Source of the DNA: Pristiophorus japonicus
Lineage: Eukaryota
Direction: 5' to 3'
Assembly: GCF_044704955.1 (NCBI RefSeq)
Contig: NC_091989.1
Span: forward strand, 142,538,001 to 142,602,000
Length of the DNA stretch: 64,000 nt
The notes under the pieces were generated by a model, which had not been told where the DNA came from, did not search any database, and worked only from the letters and a program-made list of their open reading frames with translations. The translations under genes and the position numbers were made by a program. Shown in pieces: positions 22,315-62,998 of this stretch; position 1 is the stretch's first letter; each line of letters starts with the position of its first letter.

Positions 22315-22366
22315 ATGAACTGCTTTCTAGTTGAATTGATGATATTTTACATTGTCTCTTTAGGAG
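22315..22366 (+). CDS. IgSF receptor exon 1: signal peptide
   Basis: ATG, MNCFLVELMIFYIVSLG (hydrophobic core), then consensus donor ag|gtaagt in phase 1; in frame with the V exon. Confidence 0.75.
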
Positions 22367-22372
22367 GTAAGT

Positions 22373-22382
22373 GGGGATTTCC
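22373..22382 (+). promoter_or_regulatory. NF-kB consensus site at the start of the first coding intron
   Basis: GGGGATTTCC fits GGGRNWYYCC. Confidence 0.45.
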
Positions 22383-23177
22383 TTTGAAATGTGTTTACGT
22401 CTCTGGTACTACGATTAAGGAAGTCAGAGGGCAGAAAAGGGTCTGCTGTAAAGTAGGCCTATATTCCAGGGATTCATTCCCTCGGAGGTGGAAAGTTACA
22501 CAATTTATTATTCTGGTTAGACTTTTTATGTAAAAGAACAGAAAAAATGGTGAACATCAATTAACCAAATATAAATTAGGAATGTCCACATGTTCAGGTC
22601 AGAGTTTGTGCAAGGCTGCTTCAGATATATTGAGGTATATCTGTGGCATACTCGGATCAAACGGAGAACCTGCTTCACTTTGTTTCAGACTGTGGTTTTA
22701 TTATGGGCCCTTGTGATCCCTCTTGCTTTTTGGAAGGTGGCACAATGTTACACCAGGCTGTGACGTAGGCACATTAATTGCTAAACACATTTATTAAAAA
22801 AGAAAAAGCCAGTAGCATTATCCTGCCGCAGATTTTACAGCAGTTTTTAAGCTAAGCTATCTTCAGTAAATAAAAAGTAAATCGTTGTGACGGTTGTGCT
22901 AAACTATAATGTGCATAATATTCTAATTTGCCAGTTCTATTTCCTCACCATCGACAAAAGTGTTACGGCCTGATTATTTTTATTAATACACTTCAAACAG
23001 ACTCCAGTATGGCCCAGACAGGCTGAGAAATACTTTCCACAAGCAGCTGCATCAAGCCAGTTTAAGTAATTGTCTATTAAAAACCAAAAGAGCAGCTAAT
23101 CAAATATATATCTGAACCAACCAAAACTACTGCGACTGTATCAAATTAAACTATGGCATGTTTTACCGATGAGGCAA

Positions 23178-23666
23178 GTGGCCCGACATTCAGCTTTATA
23201 AAATGACAGAGCTGCCTTTGGAAGCATGGCAGGCACCGGCAGCTCACCCCAGTAATGTTAATGAGCTCTGAGGCAAGTTTCTGTCCGACCTCAGTCCCCC
23301 CGGCTGGGGGTGGCGCCCATTTCAGGCCAGAAAGCAAGCCTTAAGGAATTTCAGCCTCGGTGTTCTTTAAGTTTTGAATAGAAGCAGGGACCTCGATCTT
23401 AATATCCACATGATGAGCGCGAGAGGGTCGGGTGGGGGGAGTGGGCACAGTTTAAAACGTTAACTACAGCGAATGCAACCCCAACCCGCCGCACATGCGC
23501 ACGTTGCCTTTTTTATGGCAGCGGATAACGGGGCGTCCTTTGTAATTAACAATTGGGAGCCCGACTTAAAATTTACTGTTGCTGCGCGGGTTTCCCAGGG
23601 GACGGAAATCTCGGCAGCGAAAGCAAGGCAGGACCTCACCCGCACCCTCTTAAATATCGGGGCCAC
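23178..23666. mobile_element. Probable Harbinger-like MITE
   Basis: Imperfect TIR gtggcccgacatt / aatatcggggccac around a GC-rich interior. Confidence 0.45.
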
Positions 23667-24530
23667 GGATTTGCTTCCTTTTAGGAATAGTAGTCGTACT
23701 TGTTCCCTTAGTGATTTATGAACAAGAGGATATACAGTCAAACAAATCAGAGGTCTCTCTGTTGTACTTCTGCCAATTCTGTGATCTCACTGCACTGTTG
23801 GGGAGATCTTGGGCTTTCTCCAGATTGAGAAGCTGCTAACATTCCCATTCAGTTGCAGTTATGCATTACTGTGTGACTCACAACATCTGGATGTAGGAAG
23901 GAACCCTTATTTAAGCCTTCTGGCTCCACAAAACTATAACTTGCAAAATGTTTTGTGGCCTTTTCCTGAGCAGCTTCCAGCTGTTTGTTTAAGGACCATT
24001 TGTTTTACTTCGGATTCCATACATAGGATTACATAGGACATCTTACACAGAAACAGGCCATTCGGCCCAAACAGTTCATTTATGCTCCACTCGAGTCTCC
24101 TCCCATCTTTCCTCATCTAAACCTATCAGCATAACCATTTATTCCCTTCTGCCTCATATGTTCGGCCTCTCATGACCCAGCACAGTTCAAGCTCCGCCCA
24201 TTTGTACCTGAATTTTGCATCGCTGTCCTGCAAGTGGCATAGGGCGCCAATTTGTGTCGTAAAGCAGCCGAATGCCTGTTTCAGACAGGCAGGTTGCGGC
24301 TCTATTTACAGGCCCATCTCAATATGGCATTGGGTCGGCCTCGGACACCAATGGGGTGGCCAAGGTGCCCGCTGCAATTGTGCAACTCTTGGCCAGTAAA
24401 ATGATGGCCATGAATTTTATTTCTCCCCAGTGGAGTTCTACTAAATAAAGCATTTATTCCAATTAATGATTTATTAGGCATATTCAAAACCTATTTTTTT
24501 CTTATATGTGTATCATTTTGTTTAATGCAG

Positions 24531-24872
24531 CAACCTTGGAGGTGGTGGTCAGCCCAGCTGTGTTCAGTGCCACAATTGGTGAAAGTGTCCTGCTAGGCTG
24601 CTTATTTTCTCACACCGCTGAGCTTGATTTGAGATACATTGTGATTGAATGGAACCACAGAGTGGGAGATGATGAAAAAGCAGTTTGTTTATTCGACTTT
24701 GGAGAATATGAAAGCTATAGACCAGGATCAAGTCTCTTTTTAAATGAGATAAGCAAAGCAAATGCTTCTTTGCTCATAAAAAATGTTACTATTCATGACA
24801 TTGGATCATATTCCTGCACAGTTTCAATATCTCCTGATAAAGCAAGGGGGCAAGTTACTCTGTCAGTCACAG
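24531..24872 (+). CDS. IgSF receptor exon 2: Ig V-set domain (B7-H6/NCR3LG1/tapasin-related-like)
   Basis: cag|ca...aca g|gtgagt, phase 1-1, 342 nt; GESVLLGC, IEW, ANASLLIKNV, DIGSYSC (DxGxYxC). Confidence 0.93.
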
Positions 24873-26892: not shown

Positions 26893-26984
26893 ATCAGTTA
26901 ACTATTCAAGGAACTAAACTGTAAACTAAATTACTTAAATACAAATTTAATTACATTTAATTAAATAGAACAAGGTCATATAGG

Positions 26985-28685
26985 GATGGCAGTGCAGGAG
27001 GTGTGCCACAACTGCAGCATGTGGGAATTTGTGGAGAGTATTATGATCCTGGACAACCACGTTTGCGATAAGTGCCTGCATCTTGAGGAAATTTAGCTCA
27101 GTTGTTGAGCTGGAGTCTGAGGTGCAGACATTGCAGGGAATCAGGGAGGGGGAAAGTTACCTGGACACTTTGATCCAGGAGTCAGTCACACTCCTTAGAT
27201 AGTGGTACAGGTCTGGTTAGTGGTCAGGGACAGGAGTTGGAATAAACGGGTCATTTTTGTGTTAGCAGGCTGTCGCTTGTGGGGTACCGTAAGGAATGGT
27301 GCTTGGGCGCCAGCTAGTCACAATCTATATCAATGATTTGGATGAAGGGACCAAATGTAATACAGGTACAACGTCCAGAATCCTCAGGACCAAATCCATT
27401 CCGGTTTTGGGGTTTTTCTGGATTTTAGGCAAGAAAATCAAGTCTGAAATCCGAAATCCTCAACTGAATCCGTGCCGGGGTTTGAGTGGCGAGGTCCGAA
27501 ATCCGGCAAAACTCAAAATCCGACACGGATTCGGTCGAGGATTCCGGATTTCAGACTTGATTTTCTTGTCTGAAATGAGGAACACTCGACCGAATCTGTG
27601 CCAGATTTTGGGTTTTGCCTCAAAAATGTCTGGGTTTTGGACAATAATTCTGTATTCCGGACGACTCCATCAGATATGCATAAAATGTCCGGTTTTCAGT
27701 CAATTCCGGTTTTCGGAGTTCCAGATTTGGGATGTTGCACCTGTATATCCAAGTTTGCTGATGATACAAAGCTAGGTGGGAATGTAAGTTGTGTGGAGGA
27801 TGCAAAGTGGCTTCAAGGGATTATAGACAGTCTAAGTGAGTGAGCAAGGACATGGCAAATGGAATATAATGTGGAGAAATGTGAAGTTATCCACTTTGGT
27901 AGGATAAGTAGAAATGCAGAGTATTTTTTAAATGGTGAGAGATTGGGAAATGTTGGTGTTCAGAGGGACCTGGGTGTCCTTGTACACAAATCACTGAAAG
28001 TTAACATGCAGGTACAGCAAGCAATTAAGAAAGCAAATGGTATGTTGGCCTTTATTATAAGAGGATTTGAATATAAGCGTAAAGACGGCTTACAGCAATT
28101 ATATAGGGCCCTGGTGAGACCGCACCTGGAGTAATGTGCACAGTTTTGGTCTCCTTACCAAAGGAAATATATACTTGCCATAGAGGGAGTGCAACAATGG
28201 TTCACCGGACTCATTCCTGGGATGGGAAGATAGTCCTATGAGGAGAGGTGAGTAGAGTAGGCCTATATTCTCTAGAGTTTAGAAGAATGAGAGGTGATCT
28301 CGTTGAAACATACAAAATTCTTACAGGGCTTGACAGGGTAGATGCAGGGAGGATGTTTCCTCTGGCTGGGGAGTCTAGAACCAGGGATCAGAGTCTCAGA
28401 ATAAGGGGTCGGCCATTTAGGACTGAGATGAGGAGAAATTTCTTTACGCAGAGGGCGGTGAATCTTTGGAATTCTCTACCCCAGAGGGCTGTGGAGACTC
28501 AGTTGATGAGTATATTCGAGACAGAGAGCGATAGATTTTTGGATATTAAGGGAATCAAGGGATAGGGGGATAGTGCAGGAAAGTAGAGTTGAGGTGGAAG
28601 ATGAGCCATGATCTTATGGAATGGCGGAGCAGGCTCAAGGGGCCGAATGGCCTACTCCTGCTCCTATTTTTTATGTTCTTATGTA
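26985..28685 (+). mobile_element. Internally deleted CR1 LINE (ORF1 start joined to the RT 3' half)
   Basis: CHNCSMWEF ORF1-like start; IYINDLDEG...KFADDT; RRMRGDLVE; CR1 tail. Confidence 0.8.
27363..27743. mobile_element. Tc1/mariner-type (pogo/Tigger-like) MITE
   Basis: TIR caggtacaacgtcc / ggatgttgcacctg; TA TSD at 27361-27362 and 27744-27745; removal restores the CR1 reading TKCNISKFADD. Confidence 0.85.
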
Positions 28686-29354
28686 GAGAAGGTGAGGCAT
28701 GTCACCCCAGAAGGTCGGAAAAGTGAAGACAGTCACCTCGGCTACTCTTGCATGTTTCTTTATGCTGCAACGAAAATACAAGTATTGTTATGGGACAGCA
28801 CAGTGCGGTTTTTACCTTTAGAACTTAATTTAAGCCTGGGTTATCCTCTTACACAATGAGCGTAACAATTTAGAGGAAAGTGTGAAGTAGACAGGTTTCT
28901 CAGAGAGAAAAAACATTAACACTGATTTTGGAAATTGGAAAGAAGGCCACCAGTGGGATAGATAAGGTAACATTTAGCAGTGAGCTAGTGATTTGTTGCT
29001 TTTGAAGGATCTGTGAGAGTGCATGAAATAAAGGGCCCAAGTTTCGGGACGCGCCTAGAACGGTGCAGCCCTGACCTGGACACCCGTTTTTCGCGCCCAA
29101 GAGTGCGCCTAAAAAATACCTGCAGATTCTCCGGCTCCCTGCAGGTCCTTTGGAGTTTGGCGCAGCGCAGCACGAGCTGTGGGGGGCGGAGCCAGGTCCC
29201 TGCGCTGAAATCAATGCCGGGACCTCTGCATAGGCGCTATAGTGGGCACGCATGTGCAGTAGCTCCAGGCGCCCGAAACTGTGTAGGAGGGGCCCGAAGC
29301 ACGCAGCCCCTAGCCCTGGCCGAATGGGCTCACTGGGGCAGCGAAGATCAGGCT

Positions 29355-30450
29355 GCACCTCCCTCCTCCAGCTCCTGCTCTGGCTCCAGCTTCCTCCCCT
29401 GTTCAGCTGGCTCTCTCAAACCCCCGCCCGCACCCCCCTCCCCCTCCCCCAACTCCCGCTCCACTCACCCCCCAGTTCCCACTCGTAACCCCCCCCCCAC
29501 CCCAGCTCCGACCTCCCCCCACAGCTCCAGCTCCGCTCCCCCCCTGACCCCCCCCAGCTCCCGCTCCGCTCCCCTCTGGACCCTCACAGTTCCCGCTCCG
29601 ACCCGCCTCCACCCCAGCTCCCGCTCCGACCTCCCCCGCAGCTCTCGCTCCGTTCCCCCCCGGAACCCCCAGCTCCCGCTCTGCTCCCCCCCCCCCAGTT
29701 CCCGCTCCGCGCCCCCCCCCCCCCCAGCTCCCGCTCCGACTCCCCCCAGCTCCCGCTCCGAACCCCCCCCCCCCCCCCAGCTCCCACTCTGAGACCGCCC
29801 CAGATCCCGCTCCGACCCCCCCCAGCTCCCGCTTCGACCCCCCAGCTCCCGCCCAGCCCCCCCCCCCCCCAGCTCCCGCTCCGACGATCCCCCCCCCACC
29901 CAGCTCCCGCTCCAATGACTCCCCCCCAGCTCCCGCTCCGACGACCCCACTCCCAGCTACCACTCCGATGACCCCTCCCCCCCCCCGCAGCTCCGGCTCC
30001 GACCTCTGACGACCGCCCCCCCCCCCAGCTCCGGCTTCCCCGGGCCACTTACCTTTAACTCCGGTCTGCTCCTTCTTCCTTCGGCAGGGCCCGCCCGCCC
30101 GACATCTTGGGCCNNNNNNNNNNNNNNNNNNNNNNNNNNNNNNNNNNNNNNNNNNNNNNNNNNNNNNNNNNNNNNNNNNNNNNNNNNNNNNNNNNNNNNN
30201 NNNNNNNNNNNNNNNNNNNNNNNNNNNNNNNNNNNNNNNNNNNNNNNNCCCTCCCTCTCTCTCCTCTCCCCCTCCTCTCCTTTCCTCTCCCTCCCTCCCT
30301 CTCCTCTCCCCCTCCCTCCCTTCCCTCCCTCTCCCCACCCCTCCTCCTCCCCCCTCCTCCTACCCACCCCTCCCCTCCTCCTCCTCTCCCCCTCCCCACT
30401 CCTCCCCCTCCTCCCCCACCCCTCCCCCCTCCTCCCCCACCCCTCCCCTC
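29355..30450. repeat. C-rich minisatellite (ccccagctcccgctccga-like units) and CT-rich low-complexity tract
   Basis: Directly visible tandem units with variable C-runs. Confidence 0.9.
30114..30248. other. Assembly gap (135 N)
   Basis: Run of n. Confidence 0.99.
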
Positions 30451-31779
30451 GCTGTCAGAAACACATAGACACTGATAGACAGAGAGACACTTACACTGAC
30501 AGATAGAGAGTGAGAGAGAGACACACAGACAGACAGAGAGAGAGAGAGACACTGACAGAGACAGAGAGAGACACACTTGGGGGGGGCCCCGTCCCAGCAT
30601 GCTGTTGGAGGGCTCCCGGTGCTGCAGTCGGTGAGTAGAACATTTTTTATTTATTGATTTTTTAATTTTTTATTACATTTTTTTGATTGATTTATTGGTT
30701 GATTTATGATGTATTTATCATTTATTATTGATGATGGCTCTTTATTGTAAAACTGAAGTGTTTAATATTTGTAAACTTCCCTTTACCCCCCCTCCCCACC
30801 CCACCCCCGTTCCCTACGCCTGATTTATAACCCAAGCCTGATTGTGTAAGTGTAAGCAAGGTTTTTCTGAGCGTACAAAAATCTACACTTACTCCATTCT
30901 AAGTTAGTTTGGAGTAAGTTTTCACTGCCTAAACTTTCAAAATGGGCGTAAGTGGCCGGACACGCCCCCTTTTGAAAAAAAAATCTGTTCCAAACTGAAA
31001 CTGTTCTAACTGACTAGAACTGGAGCAAACTAAATGCCGAGAATTGCAATTTCTAAGATACTCCATTCTAAACCAGTTGCTCCAAAAAAACAGGAGCAAC
31101 TCAGGCCGAAACTTGGCCCCAAAGAGACAAGCCCAGAGGATTATAGGAAAGATGCAATTGGCAACATTCCAAAAGAAGGAGACAGAGCAATGTTCGATCT
31201 CTGCAATGTGATGAACTTTCTGTGGAACACAGGAAAGGTAATAAAGACACTTCTGTTAAAAAGAATTGAAGAGGCAGTACACAACAATAAAATGGAGACA
31301 GCTACAGTGAGGCCTCAGAAAGAACTATTCATTTGCCCAATAAAATGTTGTCCTAAAAAAACTAATTAAGAAAAGCTAAGAATTTCAATGGAATCTCATC
31401 AGGTTTATAGATTTTTTTCTAAAAAACCCTCTGGCCACATATAAAGCTAACTTTTAGGATAGTTGTGAGATTAGGTGATAAAATAAAACAAAATAGTACC
31501 ACTGTCTGAAGATTTGAATGCAGGTTTTAAATATGCAGTTAAAATTGTTGGTCAATCAAATTGTTAAAGGCTGGCACCAGACAGCAATGCATTATTCTTT
31601 GTTTTAGGCCAGCTACATAATACATTATGAAATCAGCTGTGCACAGAAAAAGATTAAATGGAAAAGGAAAAAGTTACTGAAAGATATTCATTTTCAAACA
31701 ACACAATACTAGAGTTTGACAAAGATTGTGAAGAAAAAGGTTTAGATATGTATACATTTTGGTTGGAAGAATAAGGAGG

Positions 31780-37160: not shown

Positions 37161-37164
37161 CTGG

Positions 37165-48097: not shown

Positions 48098-51000
48098 TGT
48101 AAAGTCCTGTCCCCTCAGTACAGATTCACACGAGGCATGTAGTGAAGTCAAGGTCACTCTGGACCTGCACCTTTTATTTCACAGCTCTGGAATGCTGCAC
48201 TTGCCTGAGACCTGTGCTTATATACCTGTCTCTTGCAAGTGTACCCCCGGTGGTAAGGTATGCTGGTGGTTACAGGTCATATCTTATTACAGTCATGTAT
48301 AGCATGTTGGGATACAGTTATATATAATAATGTAAGATCCATGACATCACCCTCCTCCAAGGTCTTATTGTCTTTATAAGTTCAGTCTCTCAGGTGGTCT
48401 ACGCTCTCGCGTGGAGCGTCTGAGTTGTGGTTCAGTTGTTTGCCTTGGTGTCTGTTTTTCTTTGGGTGTGGTTGCTGGTATCTAGCCTGGGCTGTCTGTT
48501 TCGATTGGTGTGATTGTTGTTGACTCACCTGGGCTGTCTGTTGGGATTGCCCTTTCCTCAGGTTGTTCCCTCTGTCTGTCCACCAGGTGTGGTGTGAGTT
48601 CCACATTGTAGTCTGCCTGTGGTTCCGCAGTGCTGTTGGTAAATCTGCTTTTGACTTGGTCTACATGCCTCCGGCAGGTTTGGCCATTGTCCATTTGTAT
48701 TACCAGTAACCTGTTTCCTTCCTTGCCCGTTACTGTCCCTGCAAGCCATTTGGGACCCCTGCCATAGTTTAGTACAAACACTTTGTCCCCGATCTCATTC
48801 CATCTCTCCCTCGAATTTCTGTCATGGTACTCAGTCAGCTTACGGCGCTTTGCCTCAATGATTTCGTGCCTGTCTGGGAGGATTAATGAGAGCCTTGTTT
48901 TTAAAGTCCTTTTCATCAACAGTTGCGCGGGGGGGATCTCAGTCAGTGAGTGTGGACGAGATCTGTATGCCAACAACAGTCGCGACAGGCGACCCTGCAG
49001 CTTGGGACCTTGGATTTTAAGCATGCCTTGTTTAATGATTTGCACTGCTCTCTCCGCCTGGCCGTTGGAGGCCGGCTTGAACGGTGCCGTCTTGACGTGA
49101 TTTATGCCGTGGTCAATTATAAAGTCTTGGAATTCTGCGCTGGTGAAGCACGGACCATTGTCACTGACTAATATGTCAGGGATTCCGTGCGTTGCAAACA
49201 TGGTTGCGAGGCTCTCCACAGTGGTGGAGGTTGTGCTCGAGTTTAAAATGGTGCATTCGATCCACTTTGAAAATGCATCTACAACTACGAGGAAAATTTT
49301 GCCCATAAATGGGCCCGCATAGTCTACGTGCACCCGCGACCACGGTTTGGTAGGCCAGGGCCAGGGGCTCAGTGGAGCCTCCCTGGGGGCATTGCTGAGT
49401 TGGGCACAAATGGTACACCTTCGGACGCAGAGCTCCAAGTCTGCGTCAATACCAGGCCACCAGACGTGGGATCTGGCTATGGCCTTCATGAGAACGATCC
49501 CCGGATGCTCACGGTGGAGCTCCCGGACAAATGCCTCTCTGCCTCGCAGAGGCATGACTACTCGGCTGCCCCACATCAGGCAGTCTGCTTGTAGTGATAG
49601 CTCATGCATGCGCCTGTGAAAGGGTTTTAATTCCTCGGGGCAGGCATCGCGAGCCTCTGCCCAACCTCCGGTTAGGACATATCTTTTTACTAAGGATAAC
49701 GTGGGGTCGCTGGCCGTCCAGGCTCTGATTTGGTGAGCCGCCATGGGCGAACCTGTGGACTCAAAGGCATTGATTGCCATGACTATCTCACAGTCCTGTT
49801 CGTCAGACCCTTCTGTGGTCGCCAGGGGTAGCCTGCTGAGCGCGTCGGCACAGTTGTCTGTGCCTGGTCTGTGCCTTATGGTATAGTCGTAGGACGCCAG
49901 CATGAGTGCCCACTGTTGAATTCGCGCTGAGGCGTTGGCGTTTATTGCCTTGCTCTCGGATAGGTGGGACGTGAGGGGCTTGTGGTCGGTTTCTAACGCG
50001 AACTTGGCCCCAAAAAGGTATTGGTGCATCTTTTTGACACCGTACACGCACGCGAGCGCCTCCTTCTCTACCATTCCGTACCCACGCTCCACCCGCGAAA
50101 GTGATCTGGAGGCATAAGCTATGGGTTGTAATTTGCCTGCACCATTGACATGTTGCAAAACGCACCTGACCCCATATGCTGACGCATCGCATGTGAGAAC
50201 TAGCTTTTTACCTGGATCAAAGAAAGTCAAAACAGTGTTGGAACATAGAAGGTTGCATGCCTTATTGAAGGCGCGTTCCTGGGCGTCCCCCCAAAACCAA
50301 TCGCACCCCTTCCTGAGTAGCACGTGGAGAGGCTCCAGCAGCGTGCTTAAGTTCTGCATAAAGTTCCCAAAGTAATTGAGTAGCCCGAGAAAGGCGCGCA
50401 GTTCTGAGACATTCCGGGGCCTGGGTGCCAGGCAAATTGCTTCTGTTTTGGACTCTGTTGGGCGGATTCCATCAGCGGCAATCCTTCTGCCCAAAAATTC
50501 AACCTCGGGTGCGAGAAACAGGCACTTGGATTTCTTGACTCGTAGGCCTACCCGATCCAACCACTTTAGTACTTCCTCCAAATTACGGAGATGGGAGTCG
50601 GTGTCCCTGCCCGTGATAAGTATGTCGTCTTGAAATACAACCATCCCCGGGATAGACTTGAGCAGACTCTCCATGTTGCGCTGGAATATGGCAGCTGCCG
50701 ACCTGATGCCGAATGGGCATCGATTGTACATGAAAAGGCCTCGATATGTGTTGATGGTGGTGAGTAGCTTGGATTCCTCGGTCAATTCTTGCATCATATA
50801 CGCAGATGTGAGGTCTAATTTTGAGAAAAGTTTACCTCCAGCCAATGTGGCAAATAAGTCCTCTGCTCTGGGCAGCAGGTACTGGTCCTGTAGGGAGACT
50901 CTGTTTATGGTAGATTTGTAGTCCCCACAGATTCGTACGGATCCATCGGGCTTCATGACTGGGACGATGGAACTTGCCCAGTCGCTAAATTCCACAGGTG

Positions 51001-52838: not shown

Positions 52839-54062
52839 CTACTCAGCTACCAGACGCGATCCCACTCACTCACTGGGGTTCCCCCTGCAGAATTGTTAAT
52901 GAAGAGAACACTCAAAACCAGGCTCTCCCTAGTCCACCCGGATCTAAATGATCATGTGGAAAACCGGCGTCACCTGCAAAACATGTACCACGATCGCGCG
53001 GCTGTATCGCGTGACATTGATGTTAACGATCCTGTGTTTGTCCTTAATTACGGTCATGGTTCAAAATGGGTCGCTGGCACTGTCTTGGCTCAGGAGAGGA
53101 AGAGAGTGTTTATAGTCAAACTATTGAATGGACAAATGTGCAGAAAGCATTTGGATCAGACCAAACTGCGGTTCACCGACAACCAGGAACAACCTGAAGA
53201 GGACATCACCATCATCGATCCACCAACACACACCCAACCAGCAATTGACCTCGCTGTCAATCAAGAGGATGAACCCACCAGTCCCAACAGTCCTGTCAGA
53301 CCAGCCGCGCCGTAGTGCAGCAATGGTCCGACCAACTCACCCATGCCAGAGTTTGAACTCAGACGATCAACCAGGGAGCGTAGGGCACCGATCGTCTCAA
53401 TTTTTAAATAATTTGTATCAAAGACTTTGGGGGAAGTGATGTTATGTATGTAAACATTGTAACTGTGTAAGACTTGCCAACCAGAGGGCACAACTGTTGG
53501 AGGTCCAAGGATCACCTGCACACCTCGTGCAAGGGAGTGTAAAAGGTTGTCTGCCATGCTGCCATACGTAACACCGCCCACCCACTTATTGGGGGCGGAA
53601 TCATCAGAATGGGTGAAATCAACGCCCATAATATCGCCCAGCGTTACTTTCCACATGAAATTAACGCCGAGATTCAATAATACCGCCCGCCCACTTTTTT
53701 TTGTTGTAAAGATCATATTTCCCGAAACTAGCAGCCATGAGATCGCCCAGCGACACTTTCACCACCTCGCACACATATCGCCCACAATATCGTTTGCCCA
53801 AAAAAATGCCCAGAAAAAGAAGAACTAACTGGAACTAATTACAGCGTTATGGATGTCATGTTCGAGATTACATGTCACATCCTTTAAAAGGCTGCTGTGC
53901 TTCAACCTCGGGGGAGTTCAGATGTACTCTGGAGGTCATTGGAATTGATGTGAACATCTGTACAAACATCTTGACCATACTGTGGACGATTGGAATTTAA
54001 TAGGTCTTCATTGGGACATTCGTTGTTTGAGACCAATCGGTGGAAAACAGAGTGCTATTGCA

Positions 54063-55266
54063 ATGGGGCCTGTCCTTTCTCACCCTCTCTTGATGACCAC
54101 TTACATGCTGCAGACTCGAGATGGCAGAAGGTACGCTCCACAGCATCATGTGCCCAATGTAAGACGTGCCAGACTGATGAGGAGGACCAGACGTTGCACT
54201 CCCCGCAAATACAGGAAGAAGCAGTCTTACCTCAACTTGCCTGACATCACCTGCCTTCCGAAACTGCGCTTTCACAAAGAGGTTATCACTGAAGTATGCC
54301 AGCTGATAAGAGCAGATCTACATCCTGCCAGCATCATCAGAACTGCACTGTCTGTCGAGGTCAAAGTCACCGCGGCACTGTCGTTCTACGCGTCGGGTTA
54401 TTTTCAGGCCTCACCTGACGACATTTGTGGTCTGTCTCAGCATGCCACATATTGCTGCATTAGACAGGTCACTGAAGCCCTGTACGCACACAGGAGGAAC
54501 TTGATCAGCTTCCCTATGACCAAGGAGACACAGAGTGAGAGGGCTCTAGGATTCTCCAGAATTGCAAACTTTCCCAAGGTGCAGGGAGCAATAGATTGTA
54601 CGCACATCACGATGCGGGCACCTTTTCAGGGTGCAGAGGTTTTCAGGAACCGCAAGGGACTCCACTCCCTGAATGTGCAACTCCTTGTCGACCACCAGCA
54701 AATTATAATGGCAGTGAATGCTAAATTTCTGGGCAGCATCCATGATGCTCACATCCTACGTCAGAGCATTGTACCTGACTTGTTTAAGAATCAGCCACAA
54801 GGTCAATGCTGGATGCTTGGTGATAAAGGATATGGCCTCGCCACCTGGCTGATGACCTCCCTGCATGACACCCACACCGAAGCCGAGAGGCGATACAACG
54901 AGCGCCACAAAGCCATTCGCAATATCGTGGAGAAAACCATTGGAGTACTGAAGCAGCTTTAGTTGCCTGGACCACTCAGGAGGCAAGCTCCAATACCACC
55001 CTGAGCAAGTAGCTCAATTCGTGATGGTGTGCTCCATGCTGCACAACTTGGCTATCAGGAGGGGACAGGAATTGCCTGATCAGTCTGACAGTCCACCTCA
55101 GCAGAGAGAGGAAGAGGAGGACGAGGAAGCAGACGCTGAAGTCGGCCCAAACAATCAGGCTGATGCTGAAGCCATGCCCCCGCCCCCCTGTAGACTGCTT
55201 GAAAGGGCCCGTGGTGGCATGATAGCTGCAAGAGCCTTACGTCAGGAGCTCATCATGCCACCATGA
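54063..55266 (+). pseudogene. Harbinger (HARBI1-like) DDE transposase, frameshifted near 54958
   Basis: GAIDCTH, FRNRKG, HDAHIL, LGDKGY, RNIVEKTIGVLK; continues in another frame as CLDHSGG...CSMLHN. Confidence 0.9.
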
Positions 55267-58179
55267 TAGCTGTAAGCACGTTGGTGTTATTTACAAGGCT
55301 GACACACTGCTGGGTGTACAGGTGATACATCAATGGTGGGCATCACCTTGGTGACAGTTAAAATTTAAGTTGATTGAAGTTAAGTGTCATTATACCCTTT
55401 GATGTTAAGGGATCACCAGTGTGTAACGGTGCAGCTATCTGAGCCATTGCGGAACAAGGTTTTGTTAAATAAAAGACATTTAAACCTAACATTAGTCTGA
55501 AATCATCAATACTTCTGTACAAAACAACCCTTTCCCCGCCCCCCCCGCTTCTCTTCCCCACCTCTACCTCTTACCCTTCCCCTCCTGACTCCAAGCCGTC
55601 TGGCCGAGGAGGTCCTCAGGCGCTGCTTCATTGGGGGGGGGGCAGGTGGGGGATGACAGCCGAGACGCTGCTTGGACGGATACGGGAGAGGACGATTCCG
55701 AGGTGGGAACGTGCTCCGAGCCAGAAGCAAGATGTTGCTCCTGGCTCTCGTGTGGTTGGCATTGGGGATGCGGCACCTTGGGGTACAGTGTCGCGCCCCG
55801 GGACCACTGGGAGCCCTCTGCCACCAGTGTTTCTGGCTACCAGCTCCAGGGCCTCCACCATCCCTTCCATGTTATATCTTATTTGTTGGACAAAAACTCG
55901 GTGGCAACTATGTTGGTGCTTAGTAGGCTTTTTGCTGCTGGTGAATCTCCCTCATATCTCCCAAAACAGCCAAACAAGCACACACTACACCCACACACGC
56001 CTTCAGTCCCTCTCAGCTCCCTCTCTCTCTCTCCTCTTCTGCGCATGTCGTGATGACCCTTGACCTCCTAAATCGCGGGAATCGAGCGTTGCCATGCCGT
56101 TGCTAAGGATGGCGACACTTTACGGCAGAAGGTCGGTGAGATTTAACGCTACCACCCATTTCATGTCGCTCACGGTAACGCCCAATTTCAAAAATGGAGA
56201 CTAGGTGCTTTGAGAATGGCCGAGAAGCCGGCGATCTGAAAATCCATTTTACCGCCCACGTCGGAAATGGGTGTTATGCACAAAAGTGTAAAACCTAGCC
56301 CCAAATCTGAATGATGTGGAATTTCTAAGTTCATTCTGCTGTTCCTAGGTCCAGTTTTTTTATTGTTCGGAACCAACAGTTTCATAACTATCGCTCGTAA
56401 AGATTCAACCAAATAATTTACGTTTTGGTCAGTAGGCTATCTGACACGTAGGCAAATCCATCAATATGTGTAAGAGTCTCTGAACGAAACGACATGTAGA
56501 ATCTCAATATGGAATGCACACACACTCCTCTTTGGGACACAACCCACTCTCCTAAGTCCAGCGAGCTTAGGTGTAGTTTGGCAGAGCGAGGGCTTGGGAA
56601 CTCCAAGTGAGCACAGGAGTAGTGCTACAGCTAAAACCCACTCATCGGCTCCAGATAACCCTGCAAACCAATGGGAAAGCTCCCAGCCCCCAGTGATCAG
56701 TTTACTCCAAATGGAATGACAAGATTCCATTAGAGAGCTAGTCTGGCAGGGCAGTCATCAACATTGCCCTCATGCACTTGGGATCCGCTTGGCTCAGATA
56801 CTGGATTACACGTCTGCCACAGCGAGTTAACTTAATTCCGAATTTCTATATACCACTTGTATCATCTTGGAGCCACCTTGACACCAAAGAGATGGTCGTA
56901 ACTATTGACAGCTGCAGGTTTGAGTCCTTGCTAGGTGGCTAGCAGGTACCAAGAGCTCCTCAAAGTGGTGAGTGAGCATCAGAACTGACCATAAAATGTG
57001 TGAGTGCATTGTCAGCATCATGCTGACCACAGCAAGGACACATATCATATTGTGTAGCTTGAGAAGTAGCTGTTTGCCTCTATGCCAGCCAATCATGTTA
57101 GGTATTAGGCCCTGGATATATAAGAAAGTGACTTCCTTTTAACACCTTCCAGCATCAGTTGTTCAAGTCTCAGTTTCCTTATCAGCTATTAGACAGACAT
57201 CTGCCTTCAACTTGGTGGAAGAAGTTACGTAGGGCAGTTTGTGTCATGCCATACATCCTGGTGTTCTAATTGTCCCAACTTCTTAATCTAGGTCCTCATT
57301 TGAGGGGGTTTATCAAAGAAGTATGTCAGTATTATGGTGACATACCCTCCATGGTATTCAGTGACAGATCAGTGTAGGTTGCAACCATTCCTCTTTACTG
57401 CCTCTTTTCCTTTTTGCCACAAATCCACCTCATGGTTTGGTCCTGGCCCAGGCCATAGATAGCCTTTCCATTGCATGCATAGGAGTATAAGTATAAATGC
57501 AAGTTTTAAAAAATGCCCCCAAGCCTGTTCTTTTATATTACATTGCCATGTTATAGTGCAGCTCATCAACACGTGGCTTTTATTTGTATCACTATATCTC
57601 ACCTCATGTTTTAACACCAGCGAAAGAAAGGTCTTGATGCAAGCCAGCTCCTGATCTTCTAGGTCGAAAAGGAAAAGTCTTATTTTCTAAATGAGGGCCT
57701 GGAGCATGAGGTGCCGCATACCTTGGGTGCAGTGTGAGGCTGGGAGGGATACTGGAACAATCAGTAACTATTTTCACATTGACCTCACAATATAAATGGC
57801 AGTGCAGACACTGAACTGTTCACAAGTTTCACATTTTTTTTTGTCGAAAGAATTCCATTTGCGAAGGAATAGGAGCCCTCTGAAATATTGATATGTTTAA
57901 AAATGTCAAGAATTACAATAAAAGATGGAACATCAGAAGGCCTCTTGATGTACCAACAGATGTCTTGTCCATTTGACCAGATACTGTAAATAAATCTGCA
58001 GTTTCTGCATCATTTATCAATAAAGGGTGCTTTCAGTTATTTAATTGTGTTGCTTTATGCTGTGCTGCAACCAAATTTAAAACTATGTTTTCTGCCGCAG
58101 GCACAGTCTTGCTCTAGCCAGCACAGAAAAAGAGCAGCAAATACTCAATATCACATCTTTGGTTTTGTGATTTTTACAG

Positions 58180-58290
58180 GTTCCAACCCAAGAATCAGGT
58201 CACAAGCATTGCTCACTATTTTGCTAACTTTTATGATCACAGCAGTTGTTTGCTTTGGAACATTTATTTTCTACAGCCATAAAAGAACAG
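58180..58290 (+). CDS. IgSF receptor exon 4: transmembrane segment
   Basis: tttttacag|gt...aca g|gtaaat, phase 1-1, 111 nt; ALLTILLTFMITAVVCFGTFIFY followed by basic HKR. Confidence 0.85.
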
Positions 58291-58831
58291 GTAAATAACC
58301 AATCTTTTTTTAATCTTGTTTTCGGGATGCAGGTGACTTTGGCAAGACTGTATTTATTGCCCCTCTGTAGTTGTTCTGCTTGAACCACTGCAGTCCGTGT
58401 GCTGATGATGCTCCCTCAGTGGTGTTGGGTGGAAAATTTCACGATATTGACCCAGTGATGATGATCCAGTTTTAAAGATAACTCCTTCTGCCCCTGGTAT
58501 CCTACATTGTAATTATTTTTTTCAGCCATAACATTCAAATGTGCACGGTATTCTAACCAGATTTGCAAAGCTGTTGGCTTTTTAAGCTGACATTTAGTGC
58601 TTCAACCCATTTGTCAGCTTGTTAGCATTTCAGAGGAGAAATCAACTTTTGTTCACTGGCATTGGCAGTTGTCAACCAATTAGATCAGTTGAAGCGTATC
58701 ACCCAGCTTCTATCCAAAGAGAACACTAAAATAAATGTAAAATGGTGGGAAAATGTTCAATGCAGCACAGTGCTAGAATTACAGTTTATTTTGAAAAGAA
58801 CTGTGTGATTCTGTTCCTCTTTGTTTTTCAG

Positions 58832-59272
58832 TGGCTCCCAAAGTGACAGATATTATTAAACCAAGACACTTCCATAAGGATGACCCACTCTCTCTGGTTT
58901 GTGCAGTTCTCTGGTTCAAACCGAAAGCAATCCGTGTCTCTTGGTACAGAGAGGAAGCAGGCAAATTCCAGAGAGTTCTCATCAGTAAATGGGACAGCAC
59001 CACATCTTCTGTAAAACAACGTGAATACAGAAGGATAGAAGATTACTTTCAGAGTGATCATGAGCAAGACAAAACAATGCACTTCGCAGAAGGAGAATAT
59101 GACATTACCATGACTTTGAATAATCACAAAGAAAGTGGAACATACAGTTTAATATCTCAGCTCATCTTCAGATATGCAGAAGCTGCAAAAGGAAGTCAGA
59201 CATATTTTTTTGAAGTCAAGCACAACTCTTTAAAGCAAACTATCTCAAAAGTAGCTGTTTTGGAAATTAAAG
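58832..59272 (+). CDS. IgSF receptor exon 5: post-TM C1-like Ig domain lacking the second Cys
   Basis: tttttcag|tg...aaa g|gtgagt, phase 1-1, 441 nt; APKV, LVCAVLWFKPKAIRVSW, SGTYSLISQL, YFFEVKHNSL. Confidence 0.88.
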
Positions 59273-59307
59273 GTGAGTTGCTGTTAAAGAAAATTAGAAT
59301 TGTTTTA

Positions 59308-59855
59308 AGAACATAAGAACATAAATAGGAACAGGAGTAGGCCATACGGCTCCTCGAGCCTGCTCCGCCATTCAGTAAGATCATGGCTGATCTGATCATG
59401 GACTCAGCTCCACTTCCCCGCCCACTCCCCATAACCCCTTATCCCCTTATCGTTTAAGAAACTGTCTATTTCTGTTTTAAATTTATTCAATGTCCCAGCT
59501 TCCACAGCTCTCTGAGGCAGCGAATTCCACAGATTTACAACCCTCTGAGAGAAGAAATTTCTCCTCATCTCTGTTTAAATGGGCGGCCCCTTATTCTAAG
59601 ATCATGCCCCCTAGTTCTAGTATCCCCCATCAGTGGAAACATCCTCACTGCATCCACCTTGTCAAGCCCCCTCATAATCTTATACGTTTCAATAAGATCA
59701 CCTCTCATTCTTCTGAATTCCAATGAGTAGAGGCCCAACCTACTCAACCTTTCCTCATAAGTCAACCCCCTCATCCCCGGAATCAACCGAGTAAACCTTC
59801 TCTGAACTGCCTCCAAAGCAAGTATATCCTTTCGTAAATTATGGAAACCAAAATA
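59308..59855 (-). mobile_element. CR1 LINE 3' fragment
   Basis: Minus ORF 59565-59873 RKDILALEAVQRRFTRLIPG; CR1 tail. Confidence 0.9.
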
Positions 59856-60079
59856 GGCAAGATTATATAACAAAATAGAAATCCTTTGTACATTGTTGTG
59901 TATAATATTCTAGCCGACAAATTATTGTGAGCATTATTAGCATACAGGCATTTAATGCATTTAGTTGAATTCCTTATCAATTATTTTAATGGAAGCACTA
60001 ACCCATTTATAATAGTTGGGATTTTTGCTTTGGTTAAAAAATGGGCAGAGGAACGTCATATAAATGCGTTAAGTGTCAT

Positions 60080-61050
60080 AACAACATAAGAAATAGGAGC
60101 AGGAGTAGGCCATCTGGCCCCTTGAGCCTGCTCTGCCATTCAATAAGATCATGGCTATCTGATCCTGGCCTCAACTCCACTTCCCTGCCCGCTCCCCATA
60201 ACTTTTGACTCCCTTATCTTTCAAAAATCTGTCTATCTCCACCCAGAGTAGAGAATTCCAAAGATTCATGACCTTCTGAGAGAAGAAATTCTTCCTCATT
60301 TCCATTTTAAATGGGTGACCCCTTATTCTGAGACTATGCCCCCTAGTTCTAGATTTCCTCCACAAAAGGAAACATCCTCTCTGCATTTACCCTGTCAAGC
60401 CCCCCTCAGAATCTTATACATTTCAATAAGATCATCTCTCAATCTTCTAAACTCCAATGAGTATAGATCCAACCTGCTCAACCTTTCTTCATATGACAAT
60501 CCCTTCATCTCAGGAATCAACCTCATGAACCTTCTCTGAACTGGCTCCAATGCAAGTATATCCCTCCTTAAATAAGTAGACCAAAACTGTACGCTGTATT
60601 CCAGGTGTGGTCTCACCATCGCCCTGTACAGTTGTAGCAGGACTTCTTTACTTTTATAATCCATCCCCTTTGCAATGAAGGCCAACATTCCATTTAATTC
60701 TTAATTACTTGCTGTACCTGCATGCTAACTTTTTGAGTTTCATGTACAAAGACCCCCAGATCCCTCTGTACCTCAGCATTTTGTAATCTCTCCCCATTTA
60801 AATAACAATTTGCTTTTTTGTTTTTCCTACCAAAGTGGATAACCTCACTATTTCCCACATTTATACTCCATCTGCCAAATTTTTGCCCACTTACTTAACC
60901 TATCTATATCCCTTTGTAGATTCTTTGCGTCCTCCTCATAACTTGCTTTCCTACCTGTCTTTGCATCATCATCAAATTTGGCTACAATATGCTCGATCCC
61001 TTCATCCAAGCCATTAATATAGATTGTAAATAGTTGAGGACCCAGCACTG
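60080..61050 (-). mobile_element. CR1 LINE 3' fragment
   Basis: Minus ORFs 60848-61060, 60395-60688 and 60171-60386. Confidence 0.9.
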
Positions 61051-61289
61051 ATAATATCATGTGATTATATTATATAATATAATATCCATAAGCTAATGTC
61101 ACACAGTAATTTCTCGAATATCTCTGAATGCCTTAGCTGCTCTTAAAATGCCCCTAGTGAAATGAGCAGGAGGTACCACCAGGATACCAAAATATTAACC
61201 AGATTACTAGGTTTGAAGATTCGGTAGCCAATCTGCTGTTCCTTTTGCCCAAGTTAACAGTCTCATTGTGATGTCATGTGTCTTGAACC

Positions 61290-61432
61290 ATAGGGGAGTC
61301 AAGGGTTATGAGGAACAGGCAGGAAAGTGGCATTGAGGCCAAGATCAGATCAGCCATGATCTTATTGAATGACGGAGCAGGCTCGAGGGGCCGTATGGCC
61401 AAGTCCTGCTCCTATTTCTTATGTTCTTATGT
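61290..61432 (+). mobile_element. CR1 3' UTR/tail fragment
   Basis: gatcagccatgatcttattgaatg...ctcctatttcttatgttcttatgt. Confidence 0.8.
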
Positions 61433-62560
61433 GTTCAGTGACCAGTTTAGTTGTCGAAAAGAGGACCGAAATTCTGGTCCTCTACACCTGAACGGCACCA
61501 TTTTTCCCAAAATATTCTTGGTATTTTGGGAACTTTTTCTTTAATTTTACAAACAAGAAAATATATCCTTTAAATGTTTATTTCATGACTAAGAGGGTTC
61601 CAGGTTTGATTCATACCCTTATAGGCTTATCTATGATAGAGTGGTGGTAGTATTAGGGGTACCAAAATCAAGAGTGCTGTGCAGCAAATCTTGCTGAAAG
61701 TGAGCATGTGTGAATGTCAGGTCGGGCAGGATCAGTCACAACTATGATGTTCTTTGCTCACACATGAAGAATGGATCAGGAATCAGAGAACAACAGATGC
61801 CTATAGAACCATACTTGAGCAAAGAGTAAATGCCTTATGAAAGGGAGAGGAGAGCAACTTGGTAGAATAAAAGAGAAAAGTAAAAGCTGCTTACTTCTCA
61901 CTCTAGTAGTTATGGCCCTGAAATTCCATGGGGTTCTCCTGATTTTCCTGCTGTGAAGACCTTTGAGAACTGGCGTAAATGGCTATTTTTAATAATGTAC
62001 ACTTCTTCCAGGGGTTTCACCCACTTCCTCCTGGAGAACCCTGTAGAAACGCCAGGTTTGTGTGTTTAAATCCCCACGGCAGTCGATGTGGGTATGACCC
62101 ACTTTTTGCACGCTCATTACAATACTCAACAGTGGAGGCACCAGAGAACTTCACTCAGAAATGATCAGACATTTCTACCTTGCCCTGTAAAAAATATGGC
62201 TCCTTTAGCTTCGGACAGCAAAGATGACTCCAATGCCCATTTACTACAGTAAAGACAAGCAGAAATGGGAATAATAAACAATAGCTTTCAGTATCACTGT
62301 CTTTATAGGATTATTGGGCAAAAGCTGTACTGATATGTGTATAATTTAACCTACTAAACAGAGAAAACAATTTGTACTTCAAACCATGATATAAAGTCGC
62401 CAGAGAAAAATAATATGGCAAGTCGTAAAATTATACAGCATTTGAAAAATTATAAGCCAGTTATTTTTGCTGCACTAACTAAACCTCACATCTTTTAGGC
62501 GGCTTAATTTGATTATTGATAACGTTAGGTTTTAAATGTTTTCATACCGTTCCTAACAAG

Positions 62561-62998
62561 GTGCTTGTGACAATACTGAATATTTTCCATCAAAAATGAA
62601 ACGGCAAGACTGGGCAATGCATGCTATTGAAGAAGGCCGTCGTACTGTGGTTAATTACATCAGCCCAAACATACTACCACTCTTAAAGCTTTTGATGGAG
62701 AAGAAAATAATCTCTGAAGATGACCACAATGTAGTAAAAGATAAACCAGACGTTGATAAAGGGCGAACCCTTCTCGACATGCTGAGCCACAGAGGTCAGC
62801 AGCCATGTGCTAATTTTTTCAATGTGCTGCAAGGCACTGAAGACCTTTATCCTGGCATAAAGGAGTATATAAAATTACTGCTGGAATCCTACATTGACAA
62901 GGATGACAGGCCAATTATTGATCTTCTCCATGAAGACCTGCCAACTGTCAGATTTGAGGTCAACAACGAAAAAATCAGAATAACCGATTTTCCTGAAG
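62561..62998 (+). CDS. Exon encoding a CARD-like death-fold domain plus linker; probable exon 6 of the IgSF receptor
   Basis: aag|gt gct tgt...cct gaa g|gtaagc, phase 1-1, 438 nt, no stops; IEEGRRTVV...LLKLLMEKKIISEDDH...KGRTLLDMLSHRGQQPCANFFNVL...YP fits the CARD helical pattern. Confidence 0.8.

Follow-up and report, generated by a model that had tools for sequence, protein, structure and literature searches.

The stretch of DNA analysed here (the window, 64,000 nucleotides from the sawshark Pristiophorus japonicus) probably contains the first six coding exons, and thus the front half, of a gene for a type I transmembrane NLR, a judgement that applies to our explanation as a whole. We consider it likely that this gene, present once per species in elasmobranchs, encodes a protein with a B7-H6-like IgV-IgC1 pair outside, one transmembrane (TM) helix and, inside, an Ig domain lacking its disulfide, followed by CARD, NACHT with helical domains, and LRR. 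What is shown here is the exon structure, the joining of the Ig exon to the CARD exon, the match to an annotated protein, the conservation of the architecture in sharks and rays, the intact Walker motifs and a CARD-skipping isoform that keeps the frame; how the protein works we infer.

Six exons in one reading frame

A preliminary description of the window had joined six plus-strand exons with GT-AG borders, all in phase 1, into about 571 codons, and this chain agrees with an annotated protein. The exons (52, 342, 330, 111, 441 and 438 nt) contain no stop when translated one by one in the phase 1 frame, and GT is found at five of five donors and AG at five of five acceptors. By blastp, exons 2-6 are each 100% identical to consecutive stretches of the sawshark's annotated 'NLRC3-like isoform X1' (1340 aa), covering residues 39-591. 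In particular, exon 2 corresponds to residues 39-151, exon 3 to 153-261, exon 4 to 263-298, exon 5 to 300-445 and exon 6 to 447-591, and the single residues absent between these stretches are explained by codons split by introns. Intron 2 contains an assembly gap (30114-30248, no strand) in a GC-rich, C-skewed low-complexity tract whose flanks have 66-78% GC. In the alignment, the V domain passes into the C1 domain without extra residues in the annotated sawshark protein and in all 12 orthologues, so that no exon is expected to be hidden in the gap; judged from these sequences, the gap is without effect on the reading frame.

Exon 1 (22315-22366, + strand) provides 17 codons and one base, with the hydrophobic segment of a predicted signal peptide. 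The annotated sawshark isoform starts at the in-frame ATG at 22255, 20 codons before the ATG chosen in the preliminary description, and translation from 22255 gives the N-terminus of isoform X1; when N-termini are aligned, most orthologues begin at the position of the later ATG. Upstream of exon 1 lies a TATA-like sequence, ATATAAAAAG, at about 22122, and just upstream of this first coding exon an IRF/ISRE-like element, AAAGTGAAAGTGAAAG, is present on the minus strand (22198-22213). The pattern AAANNGAAANNGAAAS has 2 matches in the window as compared to 0.05 expected, a statistic that is generous since the pattern was picked after the site had been seen. The ISRE-like sequence is thus a lead for interferon/IRF control of the gene, as a candidate element with a putative promoter role.

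A B7-H6-like ectodomain on a predicted single membrane span

Exon 2 (24531-24872, + strand) encodes an extracellular IgV domain of the B7 type (Pfam V-set, 3e-9), with the canonical Cys pair and NAS and NVT sequons, whose nearest solved relatives are CD276, NCR3LG1, VTCN1, PD-L1 and TAPBPR. Exon 3 (37500-37829, + strand) encodes an extracellular IgC1 domain (Pfam C1-set, 3.5e-12) with a Cys pair, the sequence YFCEVSH and three NxS/T sequons, and its top non-antibody match is NCR3LG1 (E about 6e-15). For the whole ectodomain, B7-H6/NCR3LG1 is the nearest solved relative (E about 1e-27), and for the N-terminal 430 residues the database relatives beyond the orthologue group begin with NCR3LG1 proteins of turtles (E about 1e-32). 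The layout is that of the B7 family: a membrane-distal IgV precedes a membrane-proximal IgC1, both with canonical cysteines, and a TM segment comes next. Canonical Cys pairs and sequons are confined to the outer pair of Ig domains. Both motifs from which a B7-H6-like ectodomain had been proposed, xNASL and YxCxVxH, are present in the translated exons, and the likeness is borne out by the searches. The ectodomain thus appears closest to B7-H6/NCR3LG1, a relation drawn from the nearest matches and from the name that depositors gave to a nurse-shark sequence.

Exon 4 (58180-58290, + strand) encodes a stalk, a single predicted TM helix, formed by a hydrophobic stretch about 23 residues long, and a basic stop-transfer (HKR). 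A Kyte-Doolittle scan of isoform X1 reveals two multi-window hydrophobic segments, at residues 20-45 and 267-295, and the TM segment of exon 4 is the sole one besides the signal peptide to stay above 1.7 in a run of neighbouring windows; a single isolated window (score 1.68) is found at residue 785, within the NACHT. The type I topology assumed from the outset, with a signal peptide segment, one TM helix and HKR after it, is therefore retained, and a type I single-pass membrane protein is supported as a prediction from hydropathy and domain logic.

The same topology would arise on any membrane of the secretory pathway. The protein might thus reside in the ER, Golgi, endosome or phagosome, with the Ig pair lumenal and the anchor placing an NLR platform on the organelle, in a way that recalls the lipid anchoring or organelle targeting of NLRP3 or NLRX1; membrane association matters for several NLRs, and the literature found on this concerns NLRP3. 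We regard this residence as unlikely, as the ectodomain retains its B7-H6-like V-C1 features and sequons and is conserved at least as well as the CARD, which one would not expect of a simple anchor.

A predicted cytosolic Ig domain followed by an NLR

Exon 5 (58832-59272, + strand) encodes a C1-like Ig domain, predicted to be cytosolic, in which Pfam C1-set is matched over the N-terminal strands only (6.3e-5). It matches the C-terminal half of exon 3 with 36.5% identity (E 5e-8) and carries the conserved Trp and an inserted loop of about 30 residues that is predicted to be disordered. The first Cys is kept and the second is replaced by Phe in all 12 species (Y-x-F-x-V-x-H), so that the intradomain disulfide cannot form. 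The AF2 model is a beta sandwich (core pLDDT 77-85, mean 64.7) whose top Foldseek matches are the TAPBPR Ig domain, MHC II beta2, IgNAR C2, CL and B7-H6. On this model, exon 5 would adopt a C1-like fold minus its hallmark disulfide, consistent with a cytosolic location.

Exon 6 (62561-62998, + strand) encodes a CARD, at about residues 14-108 of the exon (Pfam CARD, 1.8e-9), and a disordered linker. Its nearest sequence matches are ICEBERG (1.2e-6), cIAP1 and NOD1; its structure model has six helices (core pLDDT about 90), and the top structural matches of the model are nearly all CARDs (NOD1, ICEBERG, ARC, NLRC4). The hints as to a CARD partner are weak: the CARD is ICEBERG/caspase-1-like by sequence and NOD1-like by modelled fold.

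The preliminary description had ended the protein with the CARD. The order of signal peptide, IgV, IgC1, TM, intracellular Ig and CARD is upheld by Pfam and by the relatives, but the CARD is not the end, as exon 6 closes with a donor site and the next exons, from the NACHT onwards, lie past 64000, outside the window. Isoform X1 and all orthologues continue after the CARD into NACHT, NLRC4_HD2 and LRR (Pfam). In isoform X1 the CARD is at residues 466-537, N-terminal to a NACHT at residues 675-841 (Pfam, 2.4e-29), which is a hallmark of NLRCs. Among 12 species, the Walker A motif GVAGIGKS is invariant and the Walker B motif LFLFDGLDE has one L/F difference, and the nearest solved relative of the NACHT part is rabbit NOD2 (4.9e-54). 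A match to LRR_6 (2.7e-14) and ribonuclease inhibitor matches across residues 1135-1339 indicate C-terminal LRRs of that type. Since the protein continues in this way, the CARD is better seen as the effector domain of an NLR than as a free receptor tail.

Transcript evidence and isoforms

The preliminary description had also placed the CARD exon and the Ig exons in one RNA and proposed a search for the junction 59272>62561 in sequence reads. This junction is found in contigs of two public runs: in each, one record covers 58829-59269 and then directly 62558-62998, a joint that equals the predicted one given a 3-letter AAG ambiguity. In both runs the contigs leave the introns and the stretch 63001-64000 uncovered (depth 0), and they are taken as cDNA because the introns are empty (the record does not label the two runs as RNA). 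In the bin 58001-58200 the mean depths of 7.35 and 2.95 equal the contig depths, 66.8 and 26.9, multiplied by 22/200, and thus the contigs that join exons 5 and 6 begin exon 4 at its acceptor. Past exon 6, the contigs run on for another 2271 and 2854 nt, a length sufficient for the remaining 749 codons.

These contigs bear on two alternatives. In the first, retention of the intron after 62998 would yield a short receptor with the CARD as its last domain, and the open frame 62596-63063 does reach 21 codons into that intron before a stop. Such a product is highly improbable, as the zero depth at 63001-64000 coincides with extension of the same contigs elsewhere, and no isoform of this kind is present among the database proteins searched. 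According to the second, a B7-like membrane protein and a CARD-NLR starting at the ATG at 62596 are two genes joined by read-through or by chimeric models. An in-frame ATG does lie only 11 codons into exon 6, the acceptor of this exon is weak (..cctaacaag/G, as opposed to a strong donor, AAG/gtaagc), and annotated isoforms without the CARD exon exist. Indeed, exon 6 (146 codons, phase 1 at both ends) is a cassette exon; the length of sawshark isoform X2 is reduced by precisely 146 residues, this isoform gives no blastp match to exon 6, and isoforms that skip the CARD exon, with the reading frame kept, are annotated in two species. However, these CARD-less isoforms still splice exon 5 to the NACHT part, the exact joint between exons 5 and 6 occurs in the contigs at a depth equal to that of exons 4 and 5, and the 11 codons ahead of the ATG are conserved (YFP..K..DW). 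The phase common to all exons and the modelling of the fusion in 13 species, together with a directly submitted nurse-shark sequence, also argue against separate genes, which are largely refuted by the contig joints and the conserved fused architecture and have a minimal chance of being correct.

Orthologues and relation to known proteins

Besides the sawshark gene, one orthologue per species is present in 12 other elasmobranchs, including sharks and rays, with NACHT-LRR parts 77-90% identical to the sawshark protein. The whole architecture recurs in these 13 species and in the nurse shark, with the CARD linked to the Ig domains. The best 106 relatives beyond the elasmobranch group are NLRs with 22-32% identity and mixed names (NLRP3-like, NLRP12-like, NLRC3, NLRC5-like), and NOD1 was not found among them. 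RefSeq and UniRef models of the sawshark and of the 12 other elasmobranchs, the nurse shark apart, bear names such as 'NLRC3-like' or 'NOD1-like', which seem to be nearest-hit labels only, as identity to other NLRs is at most 32% among the matches listed. The nurse-shark protein QTT61908.1 (1318 aa) was directly submitted as 'natural killer cell cytotoxicity receptor 3 ligand (B7H6)', presumably in connection with a 2021 paper in Immunogenetics. It is 80% identical to the sawshark protein over its full length and shares V-set, C1-set, CARD, NACHT, NLRC4_HD2 and LRR (Pfam); by these sequence measures it is the nurse-shark orthologue. The architecture had been put forward as unknown from any named gene, with the proviso that it might be annotated already; the proviso proved right, as these models and the 'B7H6' deposit exist. 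The gene itself is thus already in databases, and no paper describing a B7H6-NLR fusion was found in the accessible literature.

The protein combines features of several known systems. Mammalian B7-H6/NCR3LG1 has the same IgV-IgC1-TM layout, but it has no cytosolic Ig, CARD, NACHT or LRR; the tail of human B7-H6 is short and carries signalling motifs. NOD1, NOD2 and NLRC4 share the order of CARD, NACHT, helical domains and LRR, but they are soluble and cytosolic and lack the signal peptide, ectodomain, TM and Ig domains. MAVS and the death receptors of the TNFR family resemble it in having a membrane-held death-fold domain activated by clustering; MAVS, however, is tail-anchored and without an ectodomain, whereas the TNFR-family receptors signal through death domains and lack a NACHT engine. 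BTN3A1 (IgV-IgC-TM-B30.2) likewise has a B7-family ectodomain, one TM and, inside the cell, a domain that senses ligands, although this sensor is a B30.2 with no oligomerising ATPase, as opposed to CARD-NACHT-LRR; a lymphocyte receptor is the target of its inside-out signalling (PMC12964588). The membrane NLRs of the sea cucumber (AjNLRC4, AjNLR-new) combine Ig, TM and NACHT within a single membrane protein, but for AjNLRC4 neither a B7-type V-C1 pair nor a CARD is reported in the accessible part of the source (PMC13133943), and echinoderm membrane NLRs of this type are probably of independent origin from the shark protein.

Proposed mode of action

The NACHT would oligomerise, driven by nucleotide as in NOD1, NOD2 and NLRC4, and so gather CARDs, here on the cytosolic side of the membrane; the gathered CARDs may recruit a CARD-bearing adaptor or effector of the RIPK2 type or of the caspase-1/ASC type. 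The CARD-less isoform may represent a non-signalling or damping form. By analogy with mammalian B7-H6, the ectodomain may engage a receptor of the NKp30 (NCR3) family on lymphocytes.

Clustering of the protein by surface ligands, leading directly to CARD signalling, had been the working originally envisaged, and it is one possible direction among others. A ligand or counter-receptor bound to V-C1, at the surface or in a phagosome, would cluster the protein and trigger NACHT oligomerisation and CARD-CARD signalling, so that a surface receptor would use the NLR engine as its signalling tail. This route is favoured by the type I topology, by the position of the CARD near the membrane and by the strong conservation of the ectodomain (mean identity between sharks and rays of 71%, for IgV and for the ectodomain), as well as by AjNLRC4, with Ig outside, TM and NACHT inside, which is reported (PMC13133943) to serve at the cell surface as a Vibrio receptor controlling phagocytosis and to act via the cytoskeleton. 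We nevertheless hold outside-in signalling to be doubtful. The cytosolic LRRs and helical domains are the most conserved parts (79%), which argues for an intracellular job, the LRRs being what NLRs usually rely on for sensing and autoinhibition; moreover, B7-H6-type ectodomains are known to serve as ligands of lymphocyte receptors rather than as microbe sensors.

Given their cytosolic location, the LRRs point to a possible trigger within the cell, and a trigger sensed through them seems the more likely one. Oligomerisation in response to it would bring the ectodomains together too, as a flag that lymphocytes could read, in an inside-out manner like that of BTN3A1. Strong conservation of both ectodomain and LRRs fits either direction of signalling; overall, inside-out signalling is given about an even chance and outside-in signalling a distinctly smaller one, with other arrangements making up the rest. 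A more speculative and rather unlikely version is a two-way device, in which a danger or pathogen signal in the cytosol oligomerises the protein and thereby elicits both CARD signalling and the display, at the cell surface, of a clustered 'induced-self' ligand of the NKp30 type to NK-like or T cells. If this were true, a cytosolic NLR sensor would be hard-wired to an NKp30-type ligand in elasmobranchs, in an inside-out mode as in BTN3A1.

Gene structure and identity

The preliminary description read six plus-strand exons (22315-22366, 24531-24872, 37500-37829, 58180-58290, 58832-59272 and 62561-62998) as a membrane receptor with two outer Ig domains, an intracellular Ig domain and a terminal CARD. 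Searches run on single exons, by reference, or from database proteins show that the locus does encode a membrane Ig protein with a CARD of its own, but that the protein continues past the CARD: the six exons make up the first half of a transmembrane NLR, as indicated by the donor of exon 6 and by the annotated protein and its orthologues, which continue beyond it. The six-exon observation itself is confirmed by open phase-1 frames, splice borders and Pfam domains. In particular, the exons (52, 342, 330, 111, 441 and 438 nt) are stop-free on the plus strand in the frame fixed by phase 1, and all their borders carry GT donors and AG acceptors. Exon 2 (24531-24872) encodes a V-set domain (Pfam, 3e-9), exon 3 (37500-37829) a C1-set domain (3.5e-12), exon 4 (58180-58290) a single hydrophobic helix followed by basic residues, exon 5 (58832-59272) the first strands only of a further C1-set domain (6.3e-5), and exon 6 (62561-62998) a CARD (1.8e-9); all five lie on the plus strand. 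Exon 6 ends in a good donor (AAG/gtaagc) and is therefore not the last exon.

The identity of the gene emerged from exon 5, which gave one strong match among 1.84 billion representatives searched with HMMER, a 1168-aa protein of Narcine bancroftii. The match lies at residues 284-424, the place expected for this exon after signal, V, C1 and TM segments, and downstream of it the Narcine protein carries NACHT, NLRC4_HD2 and LRR domains. A search with the N-terminal 430 residues of this protein found one gene per species in 13 elasmobranchs (4 rays and 9 sharks), encoding proteins of 1289-1346 aa with V-set, C1-set, CARD, NACHT, HD2 and LRR domains. The sawshark member is P0061, labelled 'NLR family CARD domain-containing protein 3-like isoform X1' of Pristiophorus japonicus, to which exons 2-6 are 100% identical in exon-wise blastp (residues 39-151, 153-261, 263-298, 300-445 and 447-591, respectively). 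Its start is an in-frame ATG at 22255, 20 codons upstream of the ATG chosen in the preliminary description; in the alignment the latter position is where most orthologues begin. The NACHT-LRR parts of the other species are 77-90% identical to the sawshark protein, and the nearest NLRs outside the elasmobranch orthologue group are 22-32% identical among the best 106 relatives. No holocephalan or bony-vertebrate counterpart was found within the length ranges searched, which does not prove absence, and the CARD exon alone retrieved no homologous proteins, a result ascribed to the length window of the search and not to absence. Correspondence to any of the three 'NOD1' genes of whale shark (PMC8455134) was considered and is unsupported: NOD1 is missing from the nearest relatives, and neither Ig nor TM is mentioned in that genome paper.

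The gene is also represented by a directly submitted nurse-shark protein of 1318 aa, QTT61908.1, which clusters at 90% with the whale-shark orthologue, shares its set of Pfam domains with the sawshark protein and is 80% identical to the latter over the full length. Its deposited name is 'natural killer cell cytotoxicity receptor 3 ligand (B7H6)', and thus the gene has been cloned by specialists and regarded as shark B7H6. Full-text literature searches of accessible papers found no description of a vertebrate Ig-TM-CARD-NACHT-LRR protein, and the NLR survey in the whale-shark genome paper (PMC8455134) mentions none. The gene is annotated in the sawshark genome and deposited from nurse shark, and the architecture is therefore not counted as new.

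No paralogous exons were found elsewhere in the window. In tblastn, exon 3 has one weak C1-set-like match (40% over 27 residues, E 0.007) at 63444-63524 on the minus strand, downstream of the CARD exon and in a stretch with a contig depth of 0; the match is probably due to chance. An assembly gap (30114-30248) lies in intron 2, inside a low-complexity tract. The V domain runs directly into the C1 domain in the annotated protein and in all 12 aligned orthologues; therefore the gap hides no coding sequence and the frame is unaffected. The surrounding tract (29250-30500) is GC-rich (66-78%) and strongly C-skewed, with long spurious ORFs on both strands rich in Gly, Arg, Pro and Ser.

Splicing of the CARD exon

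The junction 59272>62561, which links the CARD exon to the Ig exons, could be followed in two small public runs of one study, X1 and X2 (not to be confused with the annotated isoforms of the same names), for which the kind of material is unrecorded. Contig depth in both is 0 in introns at 58601-58800 and 62001-62400 and also at 63001-64000, and both were taken as cDNA because of this. In a 3698-nt contig from run X1, positions 546-986 lie on 58829-59269 and positions 987-1427 on 62558-62998; a 3456-nt contig from run X2 has the same exon 5/exon 6 joint. This joint is the proposed junction, the cut being free to slide by three letters since AAG both ends exon 5 and precedes exon 6. The mean depths of the bin 58001-58200 (7.35 in X1, 2.95 in X2) equal the contig depths (66.8 and 26.9) multiplied by 22/200, and therefore the same contigs begin exon 4 at its acceptor. 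Beyond exon 6 the X1 and X2 contigs extend for 2271 and 2854 nt on sequence outside the window, each long enough for the remaining 749 codons. A two-gene reading, in which the coding sequence of a caspase-1-like or NLR gene would begin with the CARD exon, is rejected by the contig joint and by the orthologues. The main refuting outcome named in the preliminary description, a CARD exon on a transcript of its own, is thus not borne out by the data.

The 146 residues of exon 6 are exactly what is missing from the annotated isoform X2 (P0060), and one Narcine isoform likewise has no CARD; the exon thus behaves as an in-frame cassette, a status that fits its weak acceptor.

Topology and domains of the protein

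In a hydropathy scan, hydrophobicity extends over several adjacent windows at two places only, in the signal peptide and in the TM helix. A single-pass type I protein is thus predicted, with everything from exon 5 onward cytosolic, as the NACHT ATPase requires. Cysteine pairs and NxS/T sequons are kept in both outer Ig domains in a 12-species alignment, and the closest solved relative of the ectodomain is NCR3LG1. Along the protein, mean shark-ray identity is 71% for IgV, 70% for IgC1, 47% for the TM exon, 52% for the cytosolic Ig, 62% for the CARD exon, 75% for NACHT, and 79% each for the helical domains and the LRRs.

The inner Ig domain keeps the first Cys and the Trp, while the second Cys is Phe in 12 of 12 species, and the loss of the disulfide is therefore old. 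A companion claim, that sequons had been lost from this domain, holds in part, since some species carry an NST sequon. The AlphaFold2 model of exon 5, built on the orthologue alignment, is a beta sandwich (core pLDDT 77-85) with a disordered insert of about 30 residues, and its best structural matches are the C1-type domains of TAPBPR, MHC class II beta, IgNAR, light chains and B7-H6. At the sequence level, exon 5 is similar both to exon 3 (36.5% over 52 residues, E 5e-8) and to the C1 domains that multi-C1 IgSF proteins carry in bichir, lungfish, frogs and sharks. It probably derives from the same B7H6-like stock through phase-1 exon shuffling. Separate 'uncharacterized' proteins with one V and several C1 domains (P0005/P0180 of Pristiophorus japonicus, P0009 of Heterodontus francisci) contain, in their C1 domains, its nearest non-orthologous relatives, and proteins of this type are possible sources of the exon. 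In a Mustelus asterias model (P0067, residues ~277-310), the first ~25 residues of the exon are repeated before the full exon, either as a partial exon duplication or as a gene-model artefact.

The exon 6 CARD is modelled as six helices (pLDDT ~90) followed by a disordered linker, and the structures that match it best are almost without exception CARDs. It is nearest to ICEBERG/caspase-1 by sequence (1.2e-6) and to NOD1 by fold, both affinities being weak and the two rankings disagreeing as to a RIPK2-type or a caspase-1-type CARD. All 12 species share one Walker A motif (GVAGIGKS), and Walker B (LFLFDGLDE) is almost as constant. Among solved structures, rabbit NOD2 is the closest relative of the NACHT part.

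Promoter-side element and transposons

A tandem GAAAGT-type IRF/ISRE-like element lies at 22198-22213 on the minus strand, 42 nt ahead of the annotated ATG, with a TATA-like ATATAAAAAG ~75 nt further upstream (22122-22132). Against an expectation of 0.05, the window contains two matches to a loose IRF/ISRE pattern, but this pattern was picked after the site was seen.

The rest of the window is filled with transposon remains of the LINE, Ty3/Gypsy and Harbinger types; these account for the intron sizes of 12.6 and 20 kb. Intron 3 holds an uninterrupted Ty3/Gypsy-like gag-pol type ORF of 1357 codons (48482-52555, minus strand) with RVT_1, RNase H, an integrase zinc-binding domain and an integrase core. 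It is flanked by pieces of a second, broken Ty3/Gypsy-like element on the plus strand (38677-41793, 47188-48302 and 52752-53315), and so looks like a nested insertion. The same intron carries a PIF/Harbinger or HARBI1-like transposase ORF of 326 codons (53982-54962, plus strand; DDE_Tnp_4, 8e-25). LINE fragments of one family, marked by endonuclease, RVT_1 and a recurring C-terminal ..LGLYSLEFRR.RGDLIE.YK.. motif, occur on both strands at 12731-14648, 19361-20205, 27859-28565, 34422-36960, 41873-42244, 44233-46186, 59565-59873 and 60395-60688. At 59201-61600 the summed contig depths in runs X1 and X2 are ~1e4 to 1e6 at 90% likeness, so the repeats of this family are very abundant in the material.

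Proposed working and significance

For NOD1/2 and NLRC4, ATP-dependent oligomerisation of NACHT and clustering of CARDs are established. By analogy, ATP-dependent NACHT oligomerisation may cluster the CARDs of the elasmobranch protein at the inner leaflet, and the clustered CARDs would then recruit a CARD adaptor or effector, with the CARD-less isoform as a putative non-signalling variant. On the outer side, an NKp30-family partner is suggested by the nearest relatives of the ectodomain and by the name that the nurse-shark protein received from its depositors. As to direction, a cytosolic trigger is favoured because the LRRs are cytosolic and among the most conserved parts; we give an even chance to such a trigger clustering the ectodomain inside-out, as in BTN3A1. 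The outside-in mode of the preliminary description, in which ligand clustering at the surface would drive CARD signalling, is considered less likely. Membrane NLRs of sea cucumber (PMC13133943) show that receptors of Ig-TM-NACHT type can function at the surface, but they are an independent case.

The value of the finding is tempered by the existing gene models and by the nurse-shark cDNA deposited by specialists; its interest lies in function, not in gene discovery. The disulfide-less cytosolic C1-like Ig domain is an unusual object for protein evolution. Butyrophilins combine a B7-type ectodomain with B30.2, and fish NLR-C proteins an NLR with B30.2; the shark gene, with a B7-type ectodomain and an NLR, completes this pattern. 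In the textbook view vertebrate NLRs are soluble cytosolic sensors and B7-H6 is a plain stress ligand for NKp30. Here an NLR and a B7-H6-like ligand are joined in one polypeptide that is retained in every shark and ray in which it was detected, which makes it possible to test whether, and in which direction, an NLR engine can signal across a membrane, and whether innate sensing was once physically coupled to a lymphocyte ligand.
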